Origin: Basidiobolus meristosporus CBS 931.73
Taxonomy: Eukaryota > Fungi > Basidiobolomycota
Length of the DNA: 64,000 nt
NCBI GenBank assembly: GCA_002104905.1
Contig: MCFE01000037.1
Coordinates: forward strand, 140,378 to 204,377
Direction of reading: 5' to 3'
Shown here: in pieces, positions 41,166 to 64,000 of the stretch
How the letters are laid out: every line of letters starts with the position of its first letter
Numbering within the stretch: position 1 is the first letter of the stretch
Made by a program: the position numbers and the translations under genes
The notes under the pieces: generated by a model
Databases searched by the model: none
Seen by the model: only the letters and a program-made list of their open reading frames with translations
Told to the model about the DNA's origin: nothing

Positions 41166-41192
41166 TTAGGGTTAGGGTAACCCTAACCCTAA
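41166..41192. repeat. Head-to-head interstitial telomeric repeats (TTAGGG)2-TAA-(CCCTAA)2
   Basis: ttagggttagggtaaccctaaccctaa. Confidence 0.85.
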
Positions 41193-48249: not shown

Positions 48250-48263
48250 GGGTTAGGGTTAGG
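48250..48263 (+). repeat. Short interstitial telomere-like repeat GGGTTAGGGTTAGG
   Basis: About two TTAGGG units in the same polarity as the telomere. Confidence 0.5.
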
Positions 48264-48987
48264 CTCAAGGTGGGTATTATTATATTCATATCAAGGAGAG
48301 GAAAGGTGCGGGGTTCGAATCGTGGAGAAATGAAGCCACTGGTTGATTGTTTCCATCGATTCGAAATCGAATTGTCTGACGCGCAACATACGATAATCAG
48401 TTTCCGAATCGAAGGGTAATAGTAAATGATCAATATAAGCCAAACAGAAAGGAATGCGCTGATAAGAGCTTCAATGAATAATTTGTGACATTTGAAAGAG
48501 ATGCTGACTACACGTGCATACCGTATCTTTTGTAGGATCGCCTACAGTACACCCTACAGAATGTCAAACTCGAATAGTATCCTAGGGCTACGTAGTTGAA
48601 CAAAATGTGTACCTAGCCGAATCTGGAAATAAGTAAAGATCTACGCAGTGATTTCCCGGTTAGTTCCAAATTTAGGATCAAAAAGTGCTCAGAAAATCAG
48701 CTAGCTTGAGGTCCCAGAAAGTCAATTGAAATCAATTTTGATTCCCAGAAATTCAACGAAAACAGCCATCTTCGGCAGTCCTGAAATAACAGTCAAGTCT
48801 TTAATTGTAAACATCGAATTGACGATGTGATCCAACCAGTACAAATTAAAACGCGCTCATGGAAAAGTGGCATTTAATTTTTTTCATTGCAACACGTGAT
48901 TCTTGTACTTGTTACTGTACCGTTCCAATTTTTTCTTCGATAAACATGGTGCAATAATCAAGGGGACTGATATTCAAATGCAAACGT

Positions 48988-50379
48988 CTAATTGAAAGAA
49001 GCAATAACAGAGACCGAGTCGATATCCAGGATGCATTTTTTAGGGATTTGGACATTGCTCCAGCTGGGTTGCTTCTCCGACTGCTGAAAGCACTCGTAGA
49101 GTGGTCCTCCAATTTGTTCACCCTCCTTCAAAGGTGTACGGGTTTGCACTTCAACATGCAAATCATAATCTTTGCCATCACTGCTCTTGCCGTTATAGTA
49201 AAACAAGGTTGAGCCCGAACTCCAGGCAGCCTCATCCCACCAATACCCTTGATTTTGGTAAGCAGCCAAGAAGTCGTCAATGTATATGTCTACTGAGTCC
49301 CTAGTGCAGGCGCAGTTGCCGGTATTGTTGGCAAGTTTAAATTTAGAAAGCTCCGTGTCGTCACGGTGTACAGGAGAAAGAATATGCGACTTGGTCTTTG
49401 TGGTCTTCGTAACTTGAGGCCGGCGGTTTGTCACAGGGGCATCATACTCCAGATTAGATGAGCCTTTGCAGTAAGCATCGGTGGTGCCACAGTAGCCATA
49501 ATTGGAGCAGCAGTAACCTGGTTGGCACTGGTGCATCACATCTCCGAACCAGCCACAACGTGTATTGGTTTGATTTGCAACAACGATGTCTATTCCCAAT
49601 TTATCGGCATCGTAGGGATACCACTGCCATTGTATGGGCTTGTTGTTGTATCCATGATAGCCAGCTGGGCCGTTGATGGACATCCAAAGTGCCGTTTGAT
49701 CTTCTGTTAAACCTGCACCCCATGTGCCGTCGGGTCCAGGGTACGTGTACGTTATAGAGCCACCTAATGCGGGGAACCACTGGTTACCACCTTCATATCT
49801 GTAAACTTGTTTACTCCAAACGCCAACTCGGACGCCATTGCTAAGTCCCTGAGGATTTTCAAGGAACTGGTAGAAGTAGCCAAGACCATTTTTCAAGTTG
49901 TCGTTGATAACACGCAATTTCCCAAATTGCATCCATTTGTCATCAATACGTAGCTGGGCTGTGTAGATCAAATAATCACCGTCCTCTTCGTAATCGATTT
50001 GGAAGCCGTAATCCACTCCATCAAGCCATGGATAGAAATACTGCATATGGGACCCAGTGCCCTCGTGGCCAAAGCGACTAGTCACACATTCCTTACATGC
50101 TTCCAGTACGGTTGCTTTTCCATTGTTGTTGTCCCAGAGAGAGAAGAGGAATACGCGTTTGTTGGCCCATGTCTGCATCCCCATATATCCGTTATTCCAG
50201 CCGATAGCTGACCAGTAGGTTTGGTTAGGGCTGAATTCAGGAACAGATCGGACGTCTGTCCGAAAGGAGACGAACTTCTTCCCATTATCAGGGAGACTGG
50301 GGAAGTTGTGCATTGCCTGGGAGAGCACCTTCGCTGCGAACAGCGAGGTAAGCGAGAGGAAAAGGGTTGGAAGCTTCAT
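48988..50379 (-). CDS. Secreted modular protein: signal peptide + DUF3472-like domain + hevein/CBM18 chitin-binding module + unknown C-terminal domain
   Basis: Hydrophobic N-terminus. GYMGMQ..KRVFLFSLW, FGHEGTG..YPW and YQFLEN recall DUF3472. RCG...CQPGYCCSNYGYCGTTDAYC is a hevein motif. Intronless. Confidence 0.78.
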   Translation of the reverse strand: MKLPTLFLSLTSLFAAKVLSQAMHNFPSLPDNGKKFVSFRTDVRSVPEFSPNQTYWSAIGWNNGYMGMQTWANKRVFLFSLWDNNNGKATVLEACKECVTSRFGHEGTGSHMQYFYPWLDGVDYGFQIDYEEDGDYLIYTAQLRIDDKWMQFGKLRVINDNLKNGLGYFYQFLENPQGLSNGVRVGVWSKQVYRYEGGNQWFPALGGSITYTYPGPDGTWGAGLTEDQTALWMSINGPAGYHGYNNKPIQWQWYPYDADKLGIDIVVANQTNTRCGWFGDVMHQCQPGYCCSNYGYCGTTDAYCKGSSNLEYDAPVTNRRPQVTKTTKTKSHILSPVHRDDTELSKFKLANNTGNCACTRDSVDIYIDDFLAAYQNQGYWWDEAAWSSGSTLFYYNGKSSDGKDYDLHVEVQTRTPLKEGEQIGGPLYECFQQSEKQPSWSNVQIPKKCILDIDSVSVIASFN

Positions 50380-52252
50380 GATATTTTCACGAAAGCACGG
50401 AGTTCAATCATGCTCTTAAAGTAGTTCCATTTTTCCAAGATAGAAATCACGTTTCGTCACCAACCGCGAAAACAAGCTGAGGATTTGCCCTAATTGAGTA
50501 GTCTGATAGCGTTCTACTATTGTGGCAATTCGGGTAGGGTAGCTGAATGGATGAATCCTAAATGGAAGTCATCGGATAAACACATTGTCGATGGTGTTTC
50601 AATGCGGTTTCTAGAAATCACCCAAAGTAGTGGCATTTTGCATACCGGTCTTGAGAAATGAGGGTCCAAGGAAGTGTGGTCTCTCAATAATACCACTCTC
50701 AACACGGTGGAAGTGACTCTTACGGTGCATACTTGAACGGATTCGAGTATAGCAAGTGAGCCTAAAGTATTATATTACCTCGAAACTACGATGATGTAGG
50801 CTATATAAAGAAGTTTGCTCACAGGATTCCTTTTCAGAAGTTGCGGAGCGAAACTTGTAAGAATCTATGCCGATACCGCCGACAGGGAGGGGCAAATTGA
50901 TACCCTTCAATATTTACCCAGGAGAATAAACACGGCTGATATAGTGCCCTGCCGAAGATTTAATGACCATGTCTACTACGCAGAGGCGTCCATCAAATTG
51001 TAATGTGAATACTTTCCCAGAATGCCACTACGTTTAAGCATGTCTATAAACGAACACACTTTGCAGTGGGCTGTATCCAGAATATAATGGTATTAGTTTG
51101 CGCACCAAATATTTCAAATGACTCCCATTTTTGTAACATAGATTAGCCATACCACTAGTAATACTTCAGTTTTCCTTTACGTCACACCTTCATGGATACT
51201 TCTCTAGAACTTTGCGGTTAGGGATCCATTTGCTTGGCTCAACAAATATGCTGCCTTCCAATTAAGATCGTATAACGTGGCCAATAAGTCGCTAGAAAAT
51301 CTCTTGGTCGAAATTTCCATTCAGCGTATAGCATCATGACTCAATAAGGAGCTGAGTATCATGGAAAATCATGCTAAACCCCGTTTTGGGCCAAATTGAT
51401 GGACATCAAGATTTTCCTCATTTGGAATATTGCTTTGTTGGGTGGATGTAGCCGGCATTTGCACACAACAAATCTGTTACGGAGGATTGAAGAGTCATGC
51501 GAACCAGCCACGTTATGCTCGAAGTCCAGTGCATACGTTGAGGATTTACTTATGGGGAATAGCCTCACTAGGCGTTATGGCTTGGGGGACTGGTCGAGAC
51601 ACCAAGGTACACAATTGCGTAGTCTCGACATACTTCACAGCTCCATGGACCTTGAGCTCGGTGTCCAGACTTTGACTGATGGTACCTGCTGTGCTTCAGC
51701 TTTCTGCTTGGCGTGCTCATCTCCAAAAGTAGTTCTTACATATCCTCCCGTGGACGGATAGCTGGAATTTCCATTATCAACGCAATCGCAAGATCAAATC
51801 TAGTGGTTCTGATCACATCGATCACTATCTTGATACCACATTTTAAACTCGGTGAATCAGAGAACTTCCTGATGATACAACAGAGTTCAATTTTGACGAT
51901 GACGCTTTGGTCAACATAATCCACCAAGGCCCTTACACCCCTCTGCGAATATTCATACAAGCCACGCTCATGAATATGCAAATTGGTTATTTTTGATAGC
52001 GGCAGCCTCAGTTTTGCTTTGACTGTATACAAGTTGCAAGCGCCAATCATGTAACTGGGTCTAGGAATATAACACTCAGTCCTATGGTGAGGAAAGTGGA
52101 TTTAAGTGGTTTTTGTCCAATAGTCAGATATAACAGTGGACAAGTTAATGTCATAGAGATGAGAACCACCAGTTGGTGAGGTCTTTATTTTATTAGTTTG
52201 GAATATAGAAGCCAGGTGCTACTTAGACAACTGTGCACTCAAGTATTGAGTG

Positions 52253-53340
52253 TAGGGTTAGGGAGGAGGGTGGCAATCACCATCAGGGAAAATCTTTATT
52301 TCAATAACTCAAAATCAAGAAGCCAAGTTCTACATAGGTGGTTTGTTTACCAGTGAATAAAGGGAAGGGGGAGATAGTCACCAACAGGTGAAATATTTAT
52401 TTCAGTTGAAGTAAAGAAGCCAGCACTACTGTTGTAGCTTTGATACTGTTGTAAGAGTCTTGGAGATATTGGAAGTGATTGGGAGAACAAGTAGATTATG
52501 TGGTTTTCACTTAATGATTTATTCAATGTAAAAGTAGTATTTATACTTTTACCTGGTCTTGGCATTACAAACACGTAGAATAGGTTAAGGAAGGTCCCAA
52601 GAGCATGTGTGCAAAGTTTGGGGCTGTTTGGACAACTTTAAGAATTTTCATATTCTGGGTACCTGGTATTTTGGTGAAAATATTCTAAGTAAATCCCAAG
52701 AAGGAATTTGGTCAGTATTCTATAGGATATGAAGGTAATGATCTAAGTGACTAAGTCAGGTGAATATTTAGGTGGAAATTCAAATCTCTACAACAGATAC
52801 AAGAGTGTGTAGCTGAGGGGAATCTGTTAGTAAGTTAATAAGGAGGTAAGATAGTTCTTCAGTGCTCAAGACACAGTTCAGTGGGAAGGGGGGTAGCAAG
52901 AGAGGTAAGAATGACTTGTGAACAACATTAATGAGGGGAATATGATAAGGATTGATATTCATCATAAAGGGAGTGTGCTACTTCAGATATTGCTGCCAAA
53001 GGTCTGTCAAGTACTTCAGGTGGGCCAGCTTGGGTTTTTCTGACTGCCAAATATAATAAGTAAACTTCTTGACTTCAGGATCTCCAAGTATAGTTCTCCA
53101 GCAGGAGCCAGGTGTAGTGTGTGTTGTATGAGTCTTAAAGATATTGGAAGTGAATTGGGAGGACAAGTAGAGTACATGGTTCTCACTTGATGATTTATAG
53201 AATGTAAAGTAGTATTTAAACTTTTACATGGTCTTGTAATAGCACACATGTAGAAAAGGTTTAGGAAGATCCCAAGAACAAGTGTGCAAAGTTTGGGGCT
53301 GTTTGGACAACTTTGAGAATTTTCACATGCTTGGTACAAA
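52253..53340 (-). mobile_element. Old, mosaic 3' fragments of telomeric non-LTR family 1
   Basis: Decayed 3'-end signatures at ~52253 and ~52361. 52780-53130 matches the family-1 C-terminus (MMNINPYHIPL, TTPGSCWRTILGDPE). A ~200-bp segment is shared between ~52450 and ~53130. Confidence 0.75.
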
Positions 53341-54965: not shown

Positions 54966-55108
54966 CAGGGTTAGGGGGGGAGACAGTCACCAACAGGTGA
55001 AATCTTTACTTCAGTTGAAACAAAGAAGCCAGCGCTACTGTTGTAGCTTTGATACAAGAGTGTGTAGCTGAGGGGTATTTGTAGGTAAGTTAATAAGAAG
55101 TGATGATA
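54966..55108 (-). mobile_element. Family-1 3' stub joined to GGGTTAGGGGGGG
   Basis: Carries the AGACAGTCACCAACAGGTGAAATC 3'-end motif. Confidence 0.88.
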
Positions 55109-55744
55109 GCTTGTAGGGTGTAGGTGTTAAAGTAAGGGCTAGGAAAAGGTTAGAAGAGCAGGGGGTCTGGGGGACACAGTCCCCTAGAGAATAAAAAAGC
55201 AGGGGGTTTGGGGGATGCAATCCCCCATACTGCTCCCATACTCTTTAAATTCCCTTTGGATTACTTTTCTCTTATTTTTGGTTCTGGTCCCTTAGGGTTT
55301 CAATTCCTCCTCCTAACCCTTATCACCCTAACCATGAATATTTTTACCCTACAACTGGCACATTGTCTGCTCTTATAGTGGGCATGTCTAGGCTGATATT
55401 TGTCTCCCTACACACTCTCCATGCTCTGTATAGGTCTTGATGATTATTTATTTAATAAAATGTTACTTTTGATGCTATAAATAATAATTTATGGGAATCA
55501 TCCCAATCTGGCCAGAATCTCATATTTTAATAAGCTTTGGGCACCATAAATTGCACGGCCCTAATATGATAAAAAAATTTATTGCCATTGCAAATTTTCT
55601 GTAACCTGATTGCTTTTACCAAATTTAAAGTGTATCCCAAGTTCAATACATTTTATAGCTATAATAGAAACTTCATTTGACACCATTGCAACTACTACAT
55701 GTGTTCCATGTGCACATGTATCCTGCGGGAATTGTAAAAACCTA

Positions 55745-56385
55745 GCGGTGCAGTACAAAAGTGCTTTTATTTTTCATCATGCTAGTTTTCATGAGTTCCT
55801 AACGCACTTCCAAAGTACACAGTAACCATACCCCAACAGGTTTTAAGGATGCCCACTGGCTATGCTTACTTGTGTCTAGCGGGAGCCATCAATCATCAGC
55901 CATGCGGTACTGAAATGCTTTTATTTTTCATCATGCTAGTTTTGCATGAATTCATAACGCACTTTTATAGTGCGCGGTAACCATACCCCAACAGGTTTTA
56001 ATGATACCCACTTGCTATGTTTACTTGTGTCTAGCAGGAGTCATCAATTATAAGCTGTGTGGTAATAAAGTGCTTTTATTCTTCATCATGCTAGTTTTAC
56101 ATGAGTCCCTAACACACTTTTATAGTGCATGGTTACTATACCCTAACAGGTTTTAATGATACCCATTTGCTACATTTACTTGTGTCTAGCAGGAGTCATC
56201 AATCATTAGCCGCACGGTAATAAAGTGCTTTTATTTTTCATCACAATAGTTTTATATGAGTCCCTAACACACTTTTATAGTGTGCGGTAACCATTCCCCA
56301 ACAGGTTTTAATGATACCTACTTGCTATGTTTACTTGAGTCTAGCAGGAGTCATCAATCATCAGCCACGCAGTAATAAAATGCTT
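55745..56385. repeat. Subtelomeric tandem repeat, ~155-bp unit x ~4.1
   Basis: RTGCTT(TTATT) anchors at 55761, 55915, 56070, 56225 and 56380. Confidence 0.92.
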
Positions 56386-56443: not shown

Positions 56444-56469
56444 GGGTTAGGGGGGGTTAGGGTTAGGGG
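56444..56469 (+). repeat. Telomeric repeat tract at the 3' junction of the family-2 LINE
   Basis: gggttaggggggttagggttagggg (approximate G-run lengths). Confidence 0.9.
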
Positions 56470-59400
56470 TCTAAATTCTTTTATTGAATCTGATCAAGTA
56501 TAGTAATACTATTTCAACCTGATTCAAGTTGAAAAGTGCATATTGTATAAAGAAGATATATCTATAGTAATGTGAAGGTAAAATACTGCTCAAGTTGAGT
56601 TGAGTTCTGAAAAGAAATTTGTTGACAAATCAGGCTAGAAAATGAAGTAAAGCTGGGAGTTATTTGAAAGCTAAGCACTAAGGGAAAGTGTAGAGCTATA
56701 CTACCACTTCCTGAAAGGCAGGGATCTCACAGGAAGGCAGAAGCTCAGGTCTAATTGCAGATATGATAGCAGAAAGTCTCTGGATGAGCTCCCTTTGTTT
56801 GTGAAATTGGAACAAAGATTGGGTATTGTTGAACCCAAAGCAGCTCTCTACATGAGAGAAGTAAAAATACCTGCTACAGTAGGGGCACTTGGAACCCAAG
56901 CAAAGTGTGTTCATTCTCCACCTTATGGCCTGGAAGGCAAAGAAGGAGCTCCTGATGTAAAGGGATATGTCTGCTCCACTATGGGAATGTCTACTCTCAT
57001 GAGAAATAAGTCCAACTCTGTCTCTTGAGCTAGTAACTCTGGAGATATTAGACTTGTTCCGTTGGATAGTGCCACATTGAGCCATGAGTGCCAAATAATG
57101 CCATAGTGTGCCAGGGAGGCCAATTGAGCCTCTACCTGGCCACAGAGTGTGAAAGATAGCTCCGCATCTTCATGCAAAGCAGCCCCTGTGTTTCACCCAT
57201 TGTGTTGGAGAAAATCCATTTTTTGACCTTTTTTTGTTGATCAATGTAGCTCAGGATGTGTTAGAGCACAAGCAGATTGAAGATATGCATCTGGTACTCA
57301 ATACCCAGGGCACTCTGAATCTAGCTCCTGTAGCTTGTATCATGTCACAAAAATGAATGGCACTATCTTGGTCCACTGGTACTATCTGGCACTATAAGTG
57401 CTTTGTATAGATCTTACTTTAGGGCTAATATTTAAATATAGTGCCAGATAGTACCAGTGGACCAAGATAGTGCCATTCATTTTTGTGACATGATACAAGC
57501 TACAGGAGCTAGATTCAGAGTGCCATGGGTATTGAGTACCAGATGCATATCTTCAGTTCTCCTGTGCTCTTACACATCCTGAGCTACATTGATCCACAAA
57601 AAAAGGTCAAAAAATAGATTTTCTCCTGCGCAATGGGTGAAACACAGGGGCTGCTTTACATGAAGATGCAGAGCTATGTTTCACACTCTGTGGCCAAGTA
57701 TAGGCTCACTTGACCTCTTGGGCACACTATGGCATCATTTGGCACTCATGGCTCAATGTGGCACTATCCAATGGAACAAGTCTATTCTCCAGCTTCCTTT
57801 GATGCATTGATACAGAGAGAGGAATATGCTCTCCAGGTGGCTTGGCACTGTTGGAGGCCAAATACTCTCTATAACCAGCAGGAAAGTGTATCTTCTTTCT
57901 CACCAATGACTTTGGGGTGGCTTGGACTAAGTTGTTAGTAATCTTATTGACTAAGATCTTCAAAGGATTATTGGATGATGCTTTTGCATAGTGCTGCCCA
58001 AATCTGATACCCAAAGTCTCAAATCTGATTGGCACAGCCTCAATACCAGTCAGACTATGTATAAGCCTCTGATATTGCCTAGAATGGTAGTCAGAAGCAT
58101 TGACTACCCAGCCAATAGCTTCTTGCTGCAGAGCTTGTAGCTTGGTGATGAGGTCAGGATCAGCAGCCAAACACATCATAGGAGCAGCATACTCCCAAGA
58201 TGACCTCACAAAGGCCTTGAATAGCTGTAGCCTAATCAGAGGATGCCATCTGGCCCCTTTGAGCTGTAGGAATCTCAAAGTGGCAGAAGCCCTTTGAATA
58301 CACTTTTCAGTGTAAGCTGCCCAAGAAATACCACTTTGACAAGTTGGGAGTCCAAGGTAGCTGTAAGAGGAAGGTTGAGGCAGAAGGGAGTTATTGAAGG
58401 AAATATTCCACTCTGGTGTGGGACTAATGTATGCTGATTTAGCAGTGTTTACCTCCATACCATTGGCAGTACACCATTGGCTGACTTTACTCAGCAAACA
58501 ATTAGCTTCTGAGAGACTCCTAGGCAGCAATTGGATGTCATCAGCAAATAACAGTGCAGAGGGCACAGCAGCTCCTGAGTCATTGAAGCAGAGACTTTGG
58601 GCCAGGTCATCAATGTAGACATTGAACAGGATTGGTGAAAGCAAAGATCCCTGGAATAGCCCCCTGAGCCTGGGAAATGGAGATGATATCACACCATTAA
58701 CACTAATGGTGGAATAGCAGGCTGAGAAGAGTGAGTGTACAATCCTAAGAAGCTGACTGGATACATTCTGGTTCTTTAGTCTCTTCAGGAGTATTGGGAT
58801 CACTACCCTATCATATGCTTGCTTCAGGTCAATAAAGATTCGGTGTTTTCTTTCTTCATGACCTGATAGGTAAAAAGCATCATGAGATACAACTGAATGT
58901 GTTACAGTAGAGTAGCCACCCCTAAAGCCAGCTTGTGCAGGATGAAGCTGGGCCAAGGGGGAGTCCTTCAAGTGGTTGAGGAGGCAGGCCTCAAATATTC
59001 TTCTAAGCATTGGTGTCAAGGCAATAGGCCGGAAGTTGTCAATGGTTGAGGAAGTGGACTTCTTTGGCAAAGGGTGAATGTGAGAGAGATTCCACTGTGA
59101 AGGGGTAAACCCTAGCTTGAGGCAATGATGAAAGAAAATCTTCAAATCATCTATGAAAGCTGCATTTCTAGCCAAAACCTTGAGAATGCATATATGAAGA
59201 GGGTCCAGACCAGCAGACTTGGAAGAGGGATACTTGCTGATTGCAAGAAGAAGAGACTTGGCAGTGAACCATTGACTATCAGAGAGGGTGTCTTGCATGA
59301 AAGTCCCAAATGCTGGAACCCAGCCATCTTTAAGGCAATGAGCAGGTGGGTATGCAAATACTTCTTGAAAGTACTTGTATGCATCATCCACAGCAGAGAT

Positions 59401-60390
59401 ACCAGGATCTCTGGAACTGATTATTACTTCTGCCTGAGTTACCCTTTGAGCTTGCCTGAATATCACAGCAGCCTGCTGGGCAGCTGAGGCAGAGTGAAGT
59501 CTCCAAAGGGGGTCACTTCTCCTAGGACCAGATTTGGCAGCATGAACTGAGTAAGTTCCCAGGTACTCCTCACATATGACCAATACCAGGGAGTGGAAAG
59601 CAGTATAGGCAGCATCAATAGCAGCAGAGATGGTTCCTATAGGAGAACAGGATGTAAGCTCTTCTAGATGTCTCCAGGCAGTTTGCAGTATAGGAGACTC
59701 CAAAGAGTAATGGCTGCTAATGAGTGACTGAACCATAGGCTTCTCTAGTGGCTGAAGATGCAGCTTGATTGAGTCAGAAGAAGAGAAATTCTGGGTGTTA
59801 GAGGAAGAGTAGGCCATTGACACCACAGCAGCCATAAGTATATGGTCAGACTGGCCACATATAACATCAGACTGGAAGTACCAATGAGCCATTGTGTTAT
59901 ATCTGACAAAAGCATGATCAGGAGTGCTTCCCAGTGGGATGGGGGGGAGGTGCTCCATACCAAGTCTTAGAAGAAGACTCTCAAATAAGCCTATTCTACT
60001 CCTTGGTCCAACCTTCTTGGAGCCAAAGAGTTTACCAAAGTGAGTGTTGATATCACCAAAGAGCAGAGTGGGAGGCCGAGTGGGCAGGAATGAGGCAATA
60101 TCCTGACAGGACATTGAGGGAGGGAAGTAGACAGTCATTAGGCTGACTGACATCAGAGTTACACATATTGCATTTTCAGTGCAGGAGACCATGGATATCA
60201 TTGGCCTCAGATGTGGTGATACTAGACAGATCAGTCCAGCCTTCTCATGACCAGTTATGATTGGGTTAGGGACAATCCTGTTAGGGCCAATCCTGTTGGA
60301 GGTGGCTGGGAAGTATGAGTGTGATGAGTGCAGAGCTTGATCAACAAACCAAGTTTCAGCCAGGAAAATTATGTCATATCTATTATCTTT
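56470..60390 (-). mobile_element. Non-LTR retrotransposon family 2 (APE endonuclease + RT + C-terminal Cys/His knuckle), 5'-truncated within APE, interrupted by a foldback element
   Basis: DIIFLAETW, GDINTH, DHAF and SDH (APE). FRPIAL, QAGFR, FIDLKQAYD, GLFQGSLLSP, LFADDI and YLGL (RT). CPYC..H...C near the C-terminus. AATAAA near the 3' end. Confidence 0.92.
57051..57782. mobile_element. 732-bp foldback/MITE with ~346-bp inverted arms, 40-bp loop and TA target duplication
   Basis: TA|GACTTGTTCC...GGAACAAGTC|TA; arms 57051-57396 and 57437-57782. Removing it plus one TA restores the LINE frame (HQRKLENNISRVTSSRD). Confidence 0.88.
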
Positions 60391-60402
60391 GGGTTAGGGG
60401 GG

Positions 60403-62638
60403 AGACAGTCACCAACAGGTGAAATCTTTATTTCAGTTGAAACAAAGAAGCCAGCGCAACTGTTGTAGCTTTGATACAAGAGTGTGTAGCTGAGTGGAAT
60501 TTGTAGGTAAGTTAATAAGAAGTGATGATAGTTCTTCAGTGCTCAAGACACTGTTCAGTGGGAAGGGGGGTAGCAAGAGAGGTAAGAATGACTTGTGAAC
60601 AACATTAATGAGGGGAATGTGATAAGGATTGATATTCATCATAAAGGGTGTGTGCTGCTGCAGATATTGCTGCCAAAGGTCTGTCAAGTACTTCAGGTAG
60701 GCTAGCTTGGGTTTTTCTGACTGCAGAATATAGTGTGCAAACTTCTTGACTTCAGGATCTCCAAGTATAGTTCTCCAGCAAGAGCCAGGTGTTGTGTGGT
60801 GTGTTCTCTTCCAGGCCTTAATCAGTGGGTTGTTGCCGTTGTGAAGTCTGAGGTATAATCTGGTTCTAAGGTAGAGAAGTCTGATCTTATAGGGCATAAA
60901 CCCAAAAGCACCAAGAATAGCATGTCTGTAGGGGCATTCAGGCAAATGAGGCACCAAGGAGGTAATGCACCATACTGCAAACTTGTCAAGCTTAGTGCAG
61001 TCTCTAGAAGTAAGAGAGAGAAGTGGTAAGCCAAATTCCAGGACAGGGAAGACAAACTGCTTGAGTAGAAGGAGGCAGCTGGGAGCTGAAGTTGTAGGAG
61101 GAGTAACAGCCAGTAGCTTGTGGAGTGCCTGTCTTGCCAGGATAATTCTCTTCTTCAGGTGTGCTCCAGAGTCTAGTCCAGTAGGAAGGAAAGGAAAGCC
61201 AAGATATGTAGCAGAAACCTGAGCAGGTAGAGTGGAGTTCTCCAAGTTGATGGGAGAGCCCAAAGGTACTGTCTTTGCAATGGAAAGCTGGAGATTATTC
61301 TTCTGCAGATACTGGTGAATGGTCTGGGAGTTGTGTTGCACATTGGAGGAGGATATTCTGATGTCATCAGCAAAGAGGGTAACCAGGCAGTCAGCTGAGA
61401 GTCTTGGGAAATCATTCAGGAAGATGGCAAACAATATAGGACCAAGCACAGAGCCTTGAACCACTCCATTAGGAACTGAGAACACAGCTGATTGCTCACT
61501 TGGGTGCAGAATTCTTGCTTGTGGATCCAGAAACAGAGACCTGACAAGGAGGGTGAGAGAGGTACTGGAGAAGCATTGCAACTTGGACCAAAGCAGATTT
61601 CTGTCAACTGAATCAAAGGCCTTAGTAATATCAAACAGAACAGAGGGATACTTGCACTGGAGAGAGTGATCTTGGCTAAGTATGACTGCATATTCCAAGG
61701 AGAGGCCAGCAACAAAGCCAAACTGTTCAGGATGAAACTTGAGGGAGTCAGAGTAGAGCTCCTGAGCAAGCAGAAGCTCAAACAACTTTCTGCAGGTGGG
61801 CAGCAGAGATATTGGCCTGTAGGAGCTAGGATCCAGGCGCTTTCCTTTACCCTTGTACAGTGGCAGAACATTTGCAAAGGACCATTCCTCAGGAGTAGAA
61901 AGCTGGGTTGAGCATTGCTGAAACAGTGGAAGCAGAAGTGCAGACATGGCCTTGGTACTAGTCTTCAGAAGCTCATAGGAGATTGTGTCCACACCTGGAG
62001 CAGTAGAGTTGGGAAGCCTCTTGAGCACATTATGGATTCTCCCTTGATCAAGTGCAAGTGGGATGGGCAGAGTCTTGAAGTCAGGATGAAAGCCAGGAGT
62101 TGAGTACTGCTTTGTAGAGAAGAAGATGTTAGCCAGCTGTTCTGTTGAAGGTAACTTCCTGGAAGAGGGCCTCATTGCCCTGTAGAGTCTTGACACTGTT
62201 CTTGTTATAGAGTTGGAAGATTGCAGAGGCAAGGAACTCATAATGAGTATGCAGAGTGTGGTGAATTGCCTTGGAGTGGTGTATTGCTGTCAGGAGGAGC
62301 TTCTCTGTTTTTGGGTTAGGGAAACTCAGGTAGCTTTGTTGCAGGGCAGAAACAATGGATTCCCATTTTCTTGAGGTAACAGCAGTAGTCTTGCATGGCA
62401 GTGAGAGGGAGGCAGACACCAGAATCAGATGCTTCACAAAGAGCCAGGCATAGTTGAGATCATCTGGCAGAGAATGTAGCAAACTGGCAAGCTTCAAGTG
62501 GTTCCCAAAGTCTTTCTTCTGATTCTTGGTAGCTTTGTGGGTGAGCACAGTAAGTTTTGGCAGCTTCTTCTTCACAACTGGTTGCATAGAAAGGGACCAG
62601 GCTGGGTGGTCAGAGGCTCTCAAGGATTCTAGCTCAGC
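60403..62638 (-). mobile_element. Non-LTR retrotransposon family 1, longest copy (2.2 kb, RT ORF 60433-62241), 5'-truncated and telomere-capped
   Basis: APGVD, YRPISLL, QFGF, FDITKAFD, GVVQGSVLGP, LFADDI and YLGFP. 3' end follows GGGTTAGGGGGG (60391); the 5' end is followed by TTAGGG repeats (62639). Confidence 0.93.
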
Positions 62639-62670
62639 TTAGGGTTAGGGTTAGGGGAGGGTTAGGGGGG

Positions 62671-62949
62671 AGACAGTCACCAACAGGTGAAATCTTTATT
62701 TCAGTTGAAACAAAGAAGCCAGCGCTACTGTTGTAGCTTTGATACAAGAGTGTGTAGCTGAGGGGAATTTGTAGGTAAGTTAATAAGAAGTGATGATAGT
62801 TCTTCAGTGCTCAAGACACTGTTCAGTGGGAAGGGGGGTAGCAAGAGAGGTAAGAATGACTTGTGAACAACATTAATGAGGGGAATGTGATAAGGATTGA
62901 TATTCATCATAAAGGGAGTGTGCTGCTGCAGATATTGCTGCCAAAGGTC
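62671..62949 (-). mobile_element. Family-1 3' fragment (~280 bp)
   Basis: Near-identical to the 3' end of 60403-62638; flanked by TTAGGG-type junctions. Confidence 0.93.
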
Positions 62950-62956
62950 TTAGGGG

Positions 62957-63647
62957 AGACAGTCACCAACAGGTGAAATCTTTATTTCAGTTGAAACAAA
63001 GAAGCCAGCGCTACTGTTGTAGCTTTGATACAAGAGTGTGTAGCTGAGGGGAATTTGTAGGTAAGTTAATAAGAAGTGATGATAGTTCTTCAGTGCTCAA
63101 GACACTGTTCAGTGGGAAGGGGGGTAGCAAGAGAGGTAAGAATGACTTGTGAACAACATTAATGAGGGGAATGTGATAAGGATTGATATTCATCATAAAG
63201 GGAGTGTGCTGCTGCAGATATTGCTGCCAAAGGTCTGTCAAGTACTTCAGGTAGGCCAGCTTGGGTTTTTCTGACTGCAGAATAAATTCTGCAAACTTCT
63301 TGACTTCAGGATCTCCAAGTATAGTTCTCCAGCAGGAGCCAGTTGTTGTGTGGTGTGTTCTCTTCCAGGCCTTAATCAGTGGGTTGTTGCAGTGGTGAAG
63401 TCTGAGACATAATCTGGTTCTAAGGTAGAGAAGTCTGATCTTATAGGGCATAAACCCAAAAGCACCAAGAATAGCATGTCTGTAGGGGCATTCAGGCAAA
63501 TGAGGCACCAAGGAGGTAATGCACCATACTGCAAACTTGTCAAGCTTAGTGCAGTCTCTAGAAGTAAGAGAGAGAAGTGGTAAGCCAAATTCCAGTACAG
63601 GGAAGACAAACTGCTTGAGTAGAAGAAGGCAGCTGGGAGCTGAAGTT
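62957..63647 (-). mobile_element. Family-1 3' fragment (~690 bp)
   Basis: Same 3' end; truncated and capped by GGGTTAGGGGGGG. Confidence 0.93.
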
Positions 63648-63660
63648 GGGTTAGGGGGGG

Positions 63661-63832
63661 AGACAGTCACCAACAGGTGAAATCTTTATTTCAGTTGAAA
63701 CAAAGAAGCCAGCGCTACTGTTGTAGCTTTGATACAAGAGTGTGTAGCTGAGGGGAATTTGTAGGTAAGTTAATAAGAAGTGATGATAGTTCTTCAGTGC
63801 TCAAGACACTGTTCAGTGGGAAGGGGGGTAGC
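63661..63832 (-). mobile_element. Family-1 3' fragment (172 bp), terminal copy
   Basis: Directly abuts the telomere. Confidence 0.93.
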
Positions 63833-64000
63833 TTAGGGTTAGGGTTAGGGTTAGGGTTAGGGTTAGGGTTAGGGTTAGGGTTAGGGTTAGGGTTAGGGTT
63901 AGGGTTAGGGTTAGGGTTAGGGTTAGGGTTAGGGTTAGGGTTAGGGTTAGGGTTAGGGTTAGGGTTAGGGTTAGGGTTAGGGTTAGGGTTAGGGTTAGGG
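63833..64000 (+). repeat. Telomere (TTAGGG)28 running to the window end
   Basis: Perfect TTAGGG array. Confidence 0.99.

Follow-up and report, generated by a model that had tools for sequence, protein, structure and literature searches.

Telomere-tailed LINEs form a polar, telomere-capped array at a chromosome end of Basidiobolus meristosporus

TRAS1 and SART1 of Bombyx mori are long interspersed nuclear elements (LINEs) that coexist with telomerase-type repeats. They contain two open reading frames (ORFs), the second of which encodes an N-terminal APE endonuclease and a reverse transcriptase (RT), and they insert only in telomeric repeats and in a fixed orientation, the sense strand of TRAS lying on the C strand; their copies are 5'-truncated and form arrays proximal to the telomere cap. 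Both elements belong to the R1 clade, and their ORF1 carries CCHC knuckles. LINEs that encode an APE endonuclease and are known to have a specific target fall in the Tx1 and R1 clades, with TRAS as the cited example for telomeric repeats (PMC4640811); for SART1, a long poly(A) and at least three TTAGG repeats are required (PMC7265360). Here we describe a stack of LINEs, the four outermost copies of which belong to one family (family 1), at a chromosome end of the fungus Basidiobolus meristosporus CBS 931.73. The stack lies in a stretch of 64,000 nucleotides (contig MCFE01000037.1, positions 140,378 to 204,377 of the forward strand), which we refer to as the window.

Telomere-associated LINEs of fungi include MoTeR (Magnaporthe), FoTeR (Fusarium) and Cnl1 (Cryptococcus), which reside in telomerase-positive hosts, as do the Basidiobolus elements. 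All three belong to the CRE clade, and MoTeR1 and FoTeR have a single ORF with a C-terminal restriction-like (REL) endonuclease (PMC12857005). In MoTeR and FoTeR the 5' ends face the terminus, short TTAGGG tracts flank the elements and many copies are 5'-truncated (PMC7367193, PMC12857005). MoTeR forms multi-copy arrays at telomeres (PMC7367193), and Cnl1 forms massive subtelomeric arrays at nearly all ends (10.1101/2021.08.11.455996). The arrays of all three are also reshaped by recombination, and these elements have been treated mainly as telomere-targeting, genome-destabilising transposons, a link to telomere maintenance having been speculated for FoTeR and Cnl1 (PMC7367193, PMC12857005, 10.1101/2021.08.11.455996).

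Two further groups share the polarity of the Basidiobolus elements. HeT-A, TART and TAHRE of Drosophila likewise build head-to-tail terminal arrays, and TART keeps an APE domain, as the Basidiobolus elements do. Athena/Coprina and Giardia GilM/GilT are telomere-associated, with 3' ends that carry the complement of the telomere repeat.

The Basidiobolus elements are best read as TRAS/SART-like in mechanism and as MoTeR/FoTeR/Cnl1-like in arrangement. They share with TRAS1 and SART1 the two-ORF architecture, the restriction to telomeric repeats in one orientation (for TRAS the identical one), the 5' truncation, the position of the arrays and the coexistence with telomerase-type repeats. This likeness is one of architecture, and several features set the two groups apart: TRAS and SART end in poly(A), whereas the Basidiobolus elements end in a C-run and CCCTAA without an A-run, their ORF1 lacks CCHC knuckles and is split from ORF2 by one in-frame UGA, and they live in a fungus with TTAGGG as its telomere repeat. 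As in MoTeR and FoTeR, 5' ends face the terminus and copies are separated by short TTAGGG tracts. Unlike the CRE-clade elements, those of Basidiobolus have an N-terminal APE domain, a separate ORF1 and no REL or CCHC motifs; the telomere-array lifestyle thus arose on different LINE chassis. Drosophila ends have no telomerase repeats and its elements attach by poly(A), whereas the Basidiobolus end has a (TTAGGG)28 cap and a telomeric tract at every junction. Athena/Coprina encode a Penelope-type RT without an endonuclease, in contrast to the LINE-type RT and APE domain found here. Our literature search found no papers on telomeric LINEs of Basidiobolus. What is new is a group of APE-type LINEs, in an early-diverging fungus, that carry a telomeric tail and lack poly(A); the principle itself is not new.

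From the telomere inward, the array is composed as follows.

63833..64000, plus strand: telomere cap, (TTAGGG)28, perfect and reaching the window end (TRF period 6, 28.0 copies, 100% matches)
63661..63832, minus strand: family-1 copy 4, 172 bp, 3' untranslated region (UTR) and ORF2 C-terminus only; the outermost copy, abutting the telomere
63648..63660, plus strand: tract GGGTTAGGGGGGG, between the copy 3 5' end and the copy 4 3' end
62957..63647, minus strand: family-1 copy 3, 691 bp, 5'-truncated within the ORF2 C-terminal region
62950..62956, plus strand: tract TTAGGGG, joining copies 2 and 3
62671..62949, minus strand: family-1 copy 2, 279 bp
62639..62670, plus strand: 32-nt tract (TTAGGG)3-GAGGG-TTAGGGGGG, between copies 1 and 2
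60403..62638, minus strand: family-1 copy 1, 2236 bp, 5'-truncated; end of the APE domain, linker, RT, C-terminal region and 3' UTR
62606..62614, minus strand: S-D-H codons of copy 1, the last APE catalytic motif (alignment and translation)
60433..62241, minus strand: open frame of copy 1, 602 aa, RT and C-terminal region (RVT_1, E=6.7e-25)
60403..60460, minus strand: conserved 3' module, comprising helix 1, helix 2 and a pyrimidine tail into the C-run
60391..60402, plus strand: tract GGGTTAGGGGGG, between the family-2 5' end and the copy 1 3' end
56444..60390, minus strand: family-2 LINE, a distinct APE and RT family with an 824-aa open frame (RT and partial APE), 5'-truncated inside the APE domain
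54968..55109, minus strand: older family-1 copy, 142 bp, with the same 3' end and tract, 96.9-98.5% identity
53341..54967, minus strand: truncated copy of a third family, 64% amino acid identity to the related protein P0007; same orientation and same type of 3' module
52252..53121, minus strand: oldest LINE remnants of the array, family-1-like pieces (92-93% identity) and another 3' end with a CCCTAACCC tail

Searches with LINE proteins (tblastn) matched only the minus strand between 52.2 and 63.8 kb, and each piece of the stack ends centromere-ward in a short telomeric tract. The four family-1 copies have one common 3' end and four different truncation points, and all begin with AGACAGTCACCAACAGGTG on the plus (G) strand. 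Six occurrences of this 20-mer were counted in the window, where chance predicts 0.01, the two additional matches being the older copies at 54968-55109 and 52367-52446, the latter in a family-1 piece (52367-53121) within the oldest remnants. The tracts joining the four copies are 7-32 nt of G-run and TTAGGG. The 3' end of family 2 likewise enters CCCTAA repeats, in the same orientation as family 1. At none of the array junctions was there an A/T run or a readable target-site duplication. Copy 1 carries a single frameshift near 62192-62244, and the related protein P0004 aligns to this copy in two frames by tblastn.

Coordinates read directly from the window thus bear out the observation in a preliminary description of this end, which had claimed four copies (2236, ~280, ~690 and 172 bp) with a common 3' end, differing 5' truncations and a telomere cap, their 3' ends toward the centromere and free of poly(A) and target-site duplications. 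Its characterization of the array as strictly polar, telomere-capped and built with a LINE-type RT is likewise supported. Two details were amended: the G-runs do vary, as stated, but are 6, 6, 4 and 7 long rather than 3-7, and TTAGGG follows each copy except copy 3, which is followed by GGGTTAGGG.

The junction rules were derived from 24 distinct 3' junctions, found in the window and at loci L002-L012, of which L002-L009 are metagenome and Logan contigs and L010-L012 come from a 2017 B. meristosporus assembly. Every junction (24/24) ends in a C-run followed by TAA(CCC..), with no A-run; the element body passes into C4-7 and TAACCC. The tract after the C-run is 3 nt long in four junctions, 4-5 nt in two, 6 nt in eight, 9 nt in six and 15 nt in two, with single tracts of 22 and 26 nt. 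The phase of the first repeat follows the last base of the older element, as C|TTAGGG (9), T|TTAGGG (4), A|GGGTTA (5) or T|GGGTTA (5), and C|GGGTTA and A|TTAGGG never occur. A primer ending in either GGG or TTA would fit these junctions.

Copies 2-4 show 100% identity over the sequence they share but have different lengths, tracts and G-runs (6, 4 and 7). Since identical copies differ in these respects, the stack represents separate reverse-transcription events from one source, and the G-run differences would follow from slippage or a choice of register in the C-run at each start. The GGGGAG variant in the 32-nt tract resembles an attempted start on the element 3' end, abandoned after 2 nt and followed by realignment. 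Copy 1 is 97.8-98.9% identical to copies 2-4, and the older pieces are 92-98% identical. Identity therefore declines steadily toward the centromere, the youngest copies being outermost, so that outward growth of the array through repeated reverse transcription is shown. The identity of the distal copies implies recent activity, as had been proposed.

Relatives of family 1 extend these observations beyond the window. Its best protein matches are annotated proteins of B. meristosporus CBS 931.73 (92-96% identity), and metagenome and Logan contigs yielded further elements that are related to it yet distinct (P0002, 79%; P0004, 65%; P0005, 64%; P0006, 60%; P0007, 49% identity); outside the P0002-P0007 group, the nearest RTs are 30-38% identical. 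Where a contig covers the 3' end of a relative, it reads ..AATAAAGATT-CACC-loop-GGTG.., then the C-run and TAACCC(TAA), and in several of these contigs the next element follows head-to-tail. In the window and the recovered loci, this APE and RT LINE family was seen in a single orientation and only beside telomeric tracts. The family-1 3' end had no match in a scan of JGI metagenome contigs, and an Atlas search returned generic APE and RT clusters only.

The ORF2 frame of five diverged elements is already open at the base that follows the ORF1 stop, so that ORF1 and ORF2 constitute one frame with a single UGA between them. The stop is always UGA followed by CU (L001:2112-2117, L002:1449-1454, L004:2669-2674, L009:1666-1671 and L013:905-910). 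This arrangement suggests readthrough or reinitiation; UGA-CU is a leaky stop context, and as the APE domain follows it immediately, readthrough may be the route by which ORF2 is produced. ORF1 carries a CxxC..CxC motif at its N-terminus, a Ser/Pro-rich part, a coiled coil and, C-terminally, a conserved domain of ~170 aa. It matched no Pfam family, none of four ORF1s contains CCHC knuckles, and a model of the C-terminal domain gave only weak RRM/ferredoxin-like matches (E 0.03 or more). ORF2 comprises, in order, the APE nuclease, a linker, the RT and a C-terminal region; five ORF2s showed no CCHC, RHD/N or (R/K)PD motifs and no Pfam match downstream of the RT. The closest solved relative of the RT is human L1 ORF2p (E=1.2e-12), and no match to R2 at 0.01 or better was found among solved structures. 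Three other identities were consequently rejected: Penelope-like, by the LINE-type RT and APE domain; REL-endonuclease, by the lack of REL and CCHC motifs in the five ORF2s, which have an N-terminal APE domain instead; and R2-like, by the lack of an R2 match at this threshold.

Several coexisting subfamilies share one conserved 3' RNA module. When eleven 3' ends representing at least six subfamilies are aligned, UCUUUxUU pairs with AAUAAAGA to form helix 1, UCACC pairs with GGUGA to form helix 2, and a pyrimidine tail then leads into the C-run. In the RNAalifold structure, 96% of helix cells are paired, versus 36-55% with the partner slid, and one helix pair shows four pair types. The module is probably the recognition site of the RT. 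The AATAAA that had been noted near the 3' end does lie there, 24 nt upstream of the C-run. It is contained in one arm of helix 1 and, since the helix pairing is conserved, is part of a conserved structure. The suggestion that it acts as a poly(A) signal was set aside, as the motif is better read as an arm of the 3' hairpin and no copy has an A-run.

The endonuclease of family 1 had been considered beyond determination, its longest copy supposedly being cut in the linker preceding the RT. Copy 1 instead extends back to ..AELESLRASDHPAW and so includes the final endonuclease motif (..LRASDHPAW; SDH at 62606-62614), which, in alignment, corresponds to the C-terminal SDH motif in the relatives' N-terminal domain. 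From this remnant and the complete N-terminal APE domain of five relatives, the question can be answered: family 1 is a LINE of the APE-endonuclease type. Pfam matches were to Exo_endo_phos in P0004, the RT of which is 65% identical (7.4e-5, below the gathering score), and to Exo_endo_phos_2 in P0007 (3e-6, at the gathering score). Searched by sequence against PDB, the endonuclease gave a chance match only, and protein searches matched only itself or P0005. Its identity was settled by a fold search instead. An AlphaFold model of the nuclease domain (pLDDT 84.5) had its best Foldseek matches to ExoIII/APE1, with a TM score of 0.66 to the TRAS1 endonuclease (1wdu), all at prob 1.00; the model fits TRAS1 no more closely than it fits cellular APE1/ExoIII. 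GDLN, VDW and SDH are invariant in a five-sequence alignment (A2), and the domain start, LLLNC(N/H)S, directly follows the ORF1 stop in all full elements (5/5). The ratio of nonsynonymous to synonymous substitution (dN/dS) was 0.12-0.34 for the endonuclease versus 0.10-0.17 for the RT, a rough estimate with saturated dS (1.2-3.0) that places the constraint on the two domains in the same range.

The same architecture recurs outside the window. In the 2017 B. meristosporus assembly, arrays of this kind lie within ~25 kb of three contig ends, with 5' ends toward the contig end (L010-L012). At L012:12296-13295, two adjacent 499-bp family-1 units have the same truncation and tract and are 96-97% identical to copy 1; the pair is a tandem duplication, and hence recombination also shapes the arrays. 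Logan contigs from two 2016 short-read runs (13,276 and 10,023 contigs on the stretch) contain more than 50 different joints in which other internal element positions pass into a tract and 3' end, which we take as other copies with other truncation points. These data give the junction as a class abundant support from independent short-read contigs, a support that does not extend to the exact order of copies at this end. Summed depths over family 1 (window 60200-63838) were hundreds of times those of the neighbouring family-2 segment, although they are not copy numbers.

Anatomy, polarity, junction rules, age gradient, APE fold and conservation are directly observed; the mechanism behind them has to be weighed. 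On balance, we favour the reading that Basidiobolus harbours several related families of APE-endonuclease LINEs specific to the telomere repeat, family 1 among them, and that the element's own endonuclease creates the primer by nicking, as in the TRAS/SART route. The ribonucleoprotein particle would target the terminal TTAGGG tract, and the APE domain would nick the G strand within it, the nuclease thereby providing the primer. The nick would free a 3'-OH at a GGG or TTA end, which would pair with the C-run/UAA tail of the RNA and prime reverse transcription, slippage in the C-run giving 4-7 G. The 5' truncations would arise because the cDNA is often incomplete. The cDNA end would then be rejoined to, or re-extended with, TTAGGG, telomerase presumably still supplying the cap. 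As every new copy would land distal to the previous one, the stack would grow outward with its 3' ends toward the centromere.

Several points weigh against this reading. Tracts after the C-run are 3-9 nt in 20/24 junctions, at most 15 nt in 22/24 and never longer than 26 nt, whereas the cap is at least 168 bp; random nicking along a long cap would be expected to leave long internal tracts at many junctions, those of the three youngest, mutation-free copies included. An insertion away from the telomere tract with a target-site duplication would show endonuclease-driven, target-primed reverse transcription directly, and none was seen among the elements examined. Drosophila TART keeps an APE domain yet adds to ends, so that a retained endonuclease is no proof of its use. 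The usual metal-binding Glu is apparently replaced by Asp (LIDV), and endonuclease activity is therefore not certain; cleavage of the telomere repeat is a prediction only. No full-length family-1 copy from this genome was found, the B. meristosporus copies at L010-L012 are all truncated, and the nearest complete element (L002, 75% DNA identity) has a stop between the endonuclease and the RT.

The same tiny tracts are the chief argument for addition at a natural or eroded G-strand 3' end, which, in place of a nick, would pair with the CCCUAA/C-run tail before telomerase re-caps the product. On this account, which we regard as possible though doubtful, the LINEs would truly lengthen ends, acting mainly where telomeres are uncapped or critically short. 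That 22/24 junctions have tracts of at most 15 nt, set against the cap, is what would be expected if hardly any repeats remain at the time of addition, and such tracts occur even at the three identical youngest copies. The GGGGAG-GGTTAGGG of the 32-nt tract resembles an aborted start and re-extension of a free end, the phase rule (C|TTAGGG 9, A|GGGTTA 5, never the converse) fits a free 3' end aligning on the template, and the polarity is that of HeT-A/TART. This polarity, like the junctions themselves, is also predicted by G-strand nicking of the TRAS/SART type, and microhomology joining at a nick would account for the phase rule equally well. The APE domain, moreover, is complete and constrained like the RT in five diverged lineages, whereas telomeric elements that are independent of an endonuclease, such as Athena/Coprina, have lost it. 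Internal tracts in MoTeR arrays are stable only up to (TTAGGG)2, breakage being frequent once three or more repeats are present (PMC7367193); since long tracts break there, the short tracts may reflect survivorship and not mechanism. The earlier proposal that the RNA tail pairs with the G strand accords with the variable G-run, but its choice of the natural overhang as primer is not supported as stated.

A further step would be to regard the APE-type LINEs as a second pathway of end extension beside telomerase, which we consider rather unlikely. They would be added to ends with about two repeats or fewer, or to fresh breaks, the C-run/CCCUAA tail pairing with the last bases of the G strand and telomerase re-capping the end. 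If this were true, the LINEs would serve as a buffer or healing system in a fungus with very many chromosome ends, and would not be parasites only. The hybrid retrotransposon/telomerase end-maintenance system put forward in the preliminary description is a speculative functional claim, and the idea itself is not new, arrays that complement telomerase having already been raised for Cnl1 (10.1101/2021.08.11.455996).

Recombination between chromosome ends, in the form of break-induced replication, D-loop copying or unequal exchange that shuffles a few old insertions while retrotransposition itself is now rare, is an improbable source of the array as a whole. The adjacent 499-bp units of L012 share both truncation point and tract, a 155-bp satellite (described below) and similar blocks recur at several ends, and MoTeR and Cnl1 arrays expand and contract in this manner (PMC7367193; 10.1101/2021.08.11.455996). 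Duplication, however, cannot yield the three truncation points, G-run lengths and tracts of the identical copies 2-4; there are more than 50 different truncation joints in the short-read contigs, and the data suggest that most junctions are unique in truncation point and tract. The steady fall of identity toward the centromere and open reading frames under purifying selection also speak against it. An assembly artefact, with tip repeats mis-joined in a false order, is most improbable: although the family is extremely repetitive and the stretch is spanned by none of the listed contigs, its architecture recurs in the separate 2017 assembly (L010-L012), in unrelated metagenome and Logan contigs (L002-L009) and in short-read contigs.

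Telomere-targeting retrotransposons in telomerase-positive hosts are natural intermediates between ordinary telomeres and the Drosophila solution. Basidiobolus provides an independent case on an APE chassis, in which a telomeric tail replaces poly(A) and the copy number is very high. It offers a second independent system in which to ask how a LINE recognises telomere repeats, whether a nick or a natural end serves as primer, and whether such arrays protect or destabilise chromosome ends. The case is of interest to transposon and telomere specialists, as the cited APE-type telomeric example, TRAS, is from an insect and the fungal examples are CRE-clade elements with restriction-like nucleases.

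Further features of the window accompany the array. Between the 142-bp family-1 copy and family 2 lies the 155-bp satellite (4.1 copies, window 55758-56385), which, together with adjoining telomere-like motifs, recurs in LINE arrays at L011:6180-6900 and L010:13104-13350; it could be a shared subtelomeric block or a non-autonomous passenger. Centromere-ward of the stack, a seemingly intact host gene (48253-50379; DUF3472 and a chitin-binding domain, 463 aa) is preceded at ~48250 by a GGGTTAGGGTTAGG tract. The succession of this tract, the host gene and the LINE stack from 52.2 kb suggests an older chromosome end with later additions. A head-to-head (TTAGGG)2-TAA-(CCCTAA)2 lies 23 kb internally, at 41166-41192, possibly as a fusion scar; no LINE is inserted there. 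Between 7528 and 37600, at least nine intronless uricase-like ORFs of 296 or 283 aa (Pfam Uricase, E=2e-66) are arrayed in tandem in the subtelomere, most of them on the minus strand and one flipped.

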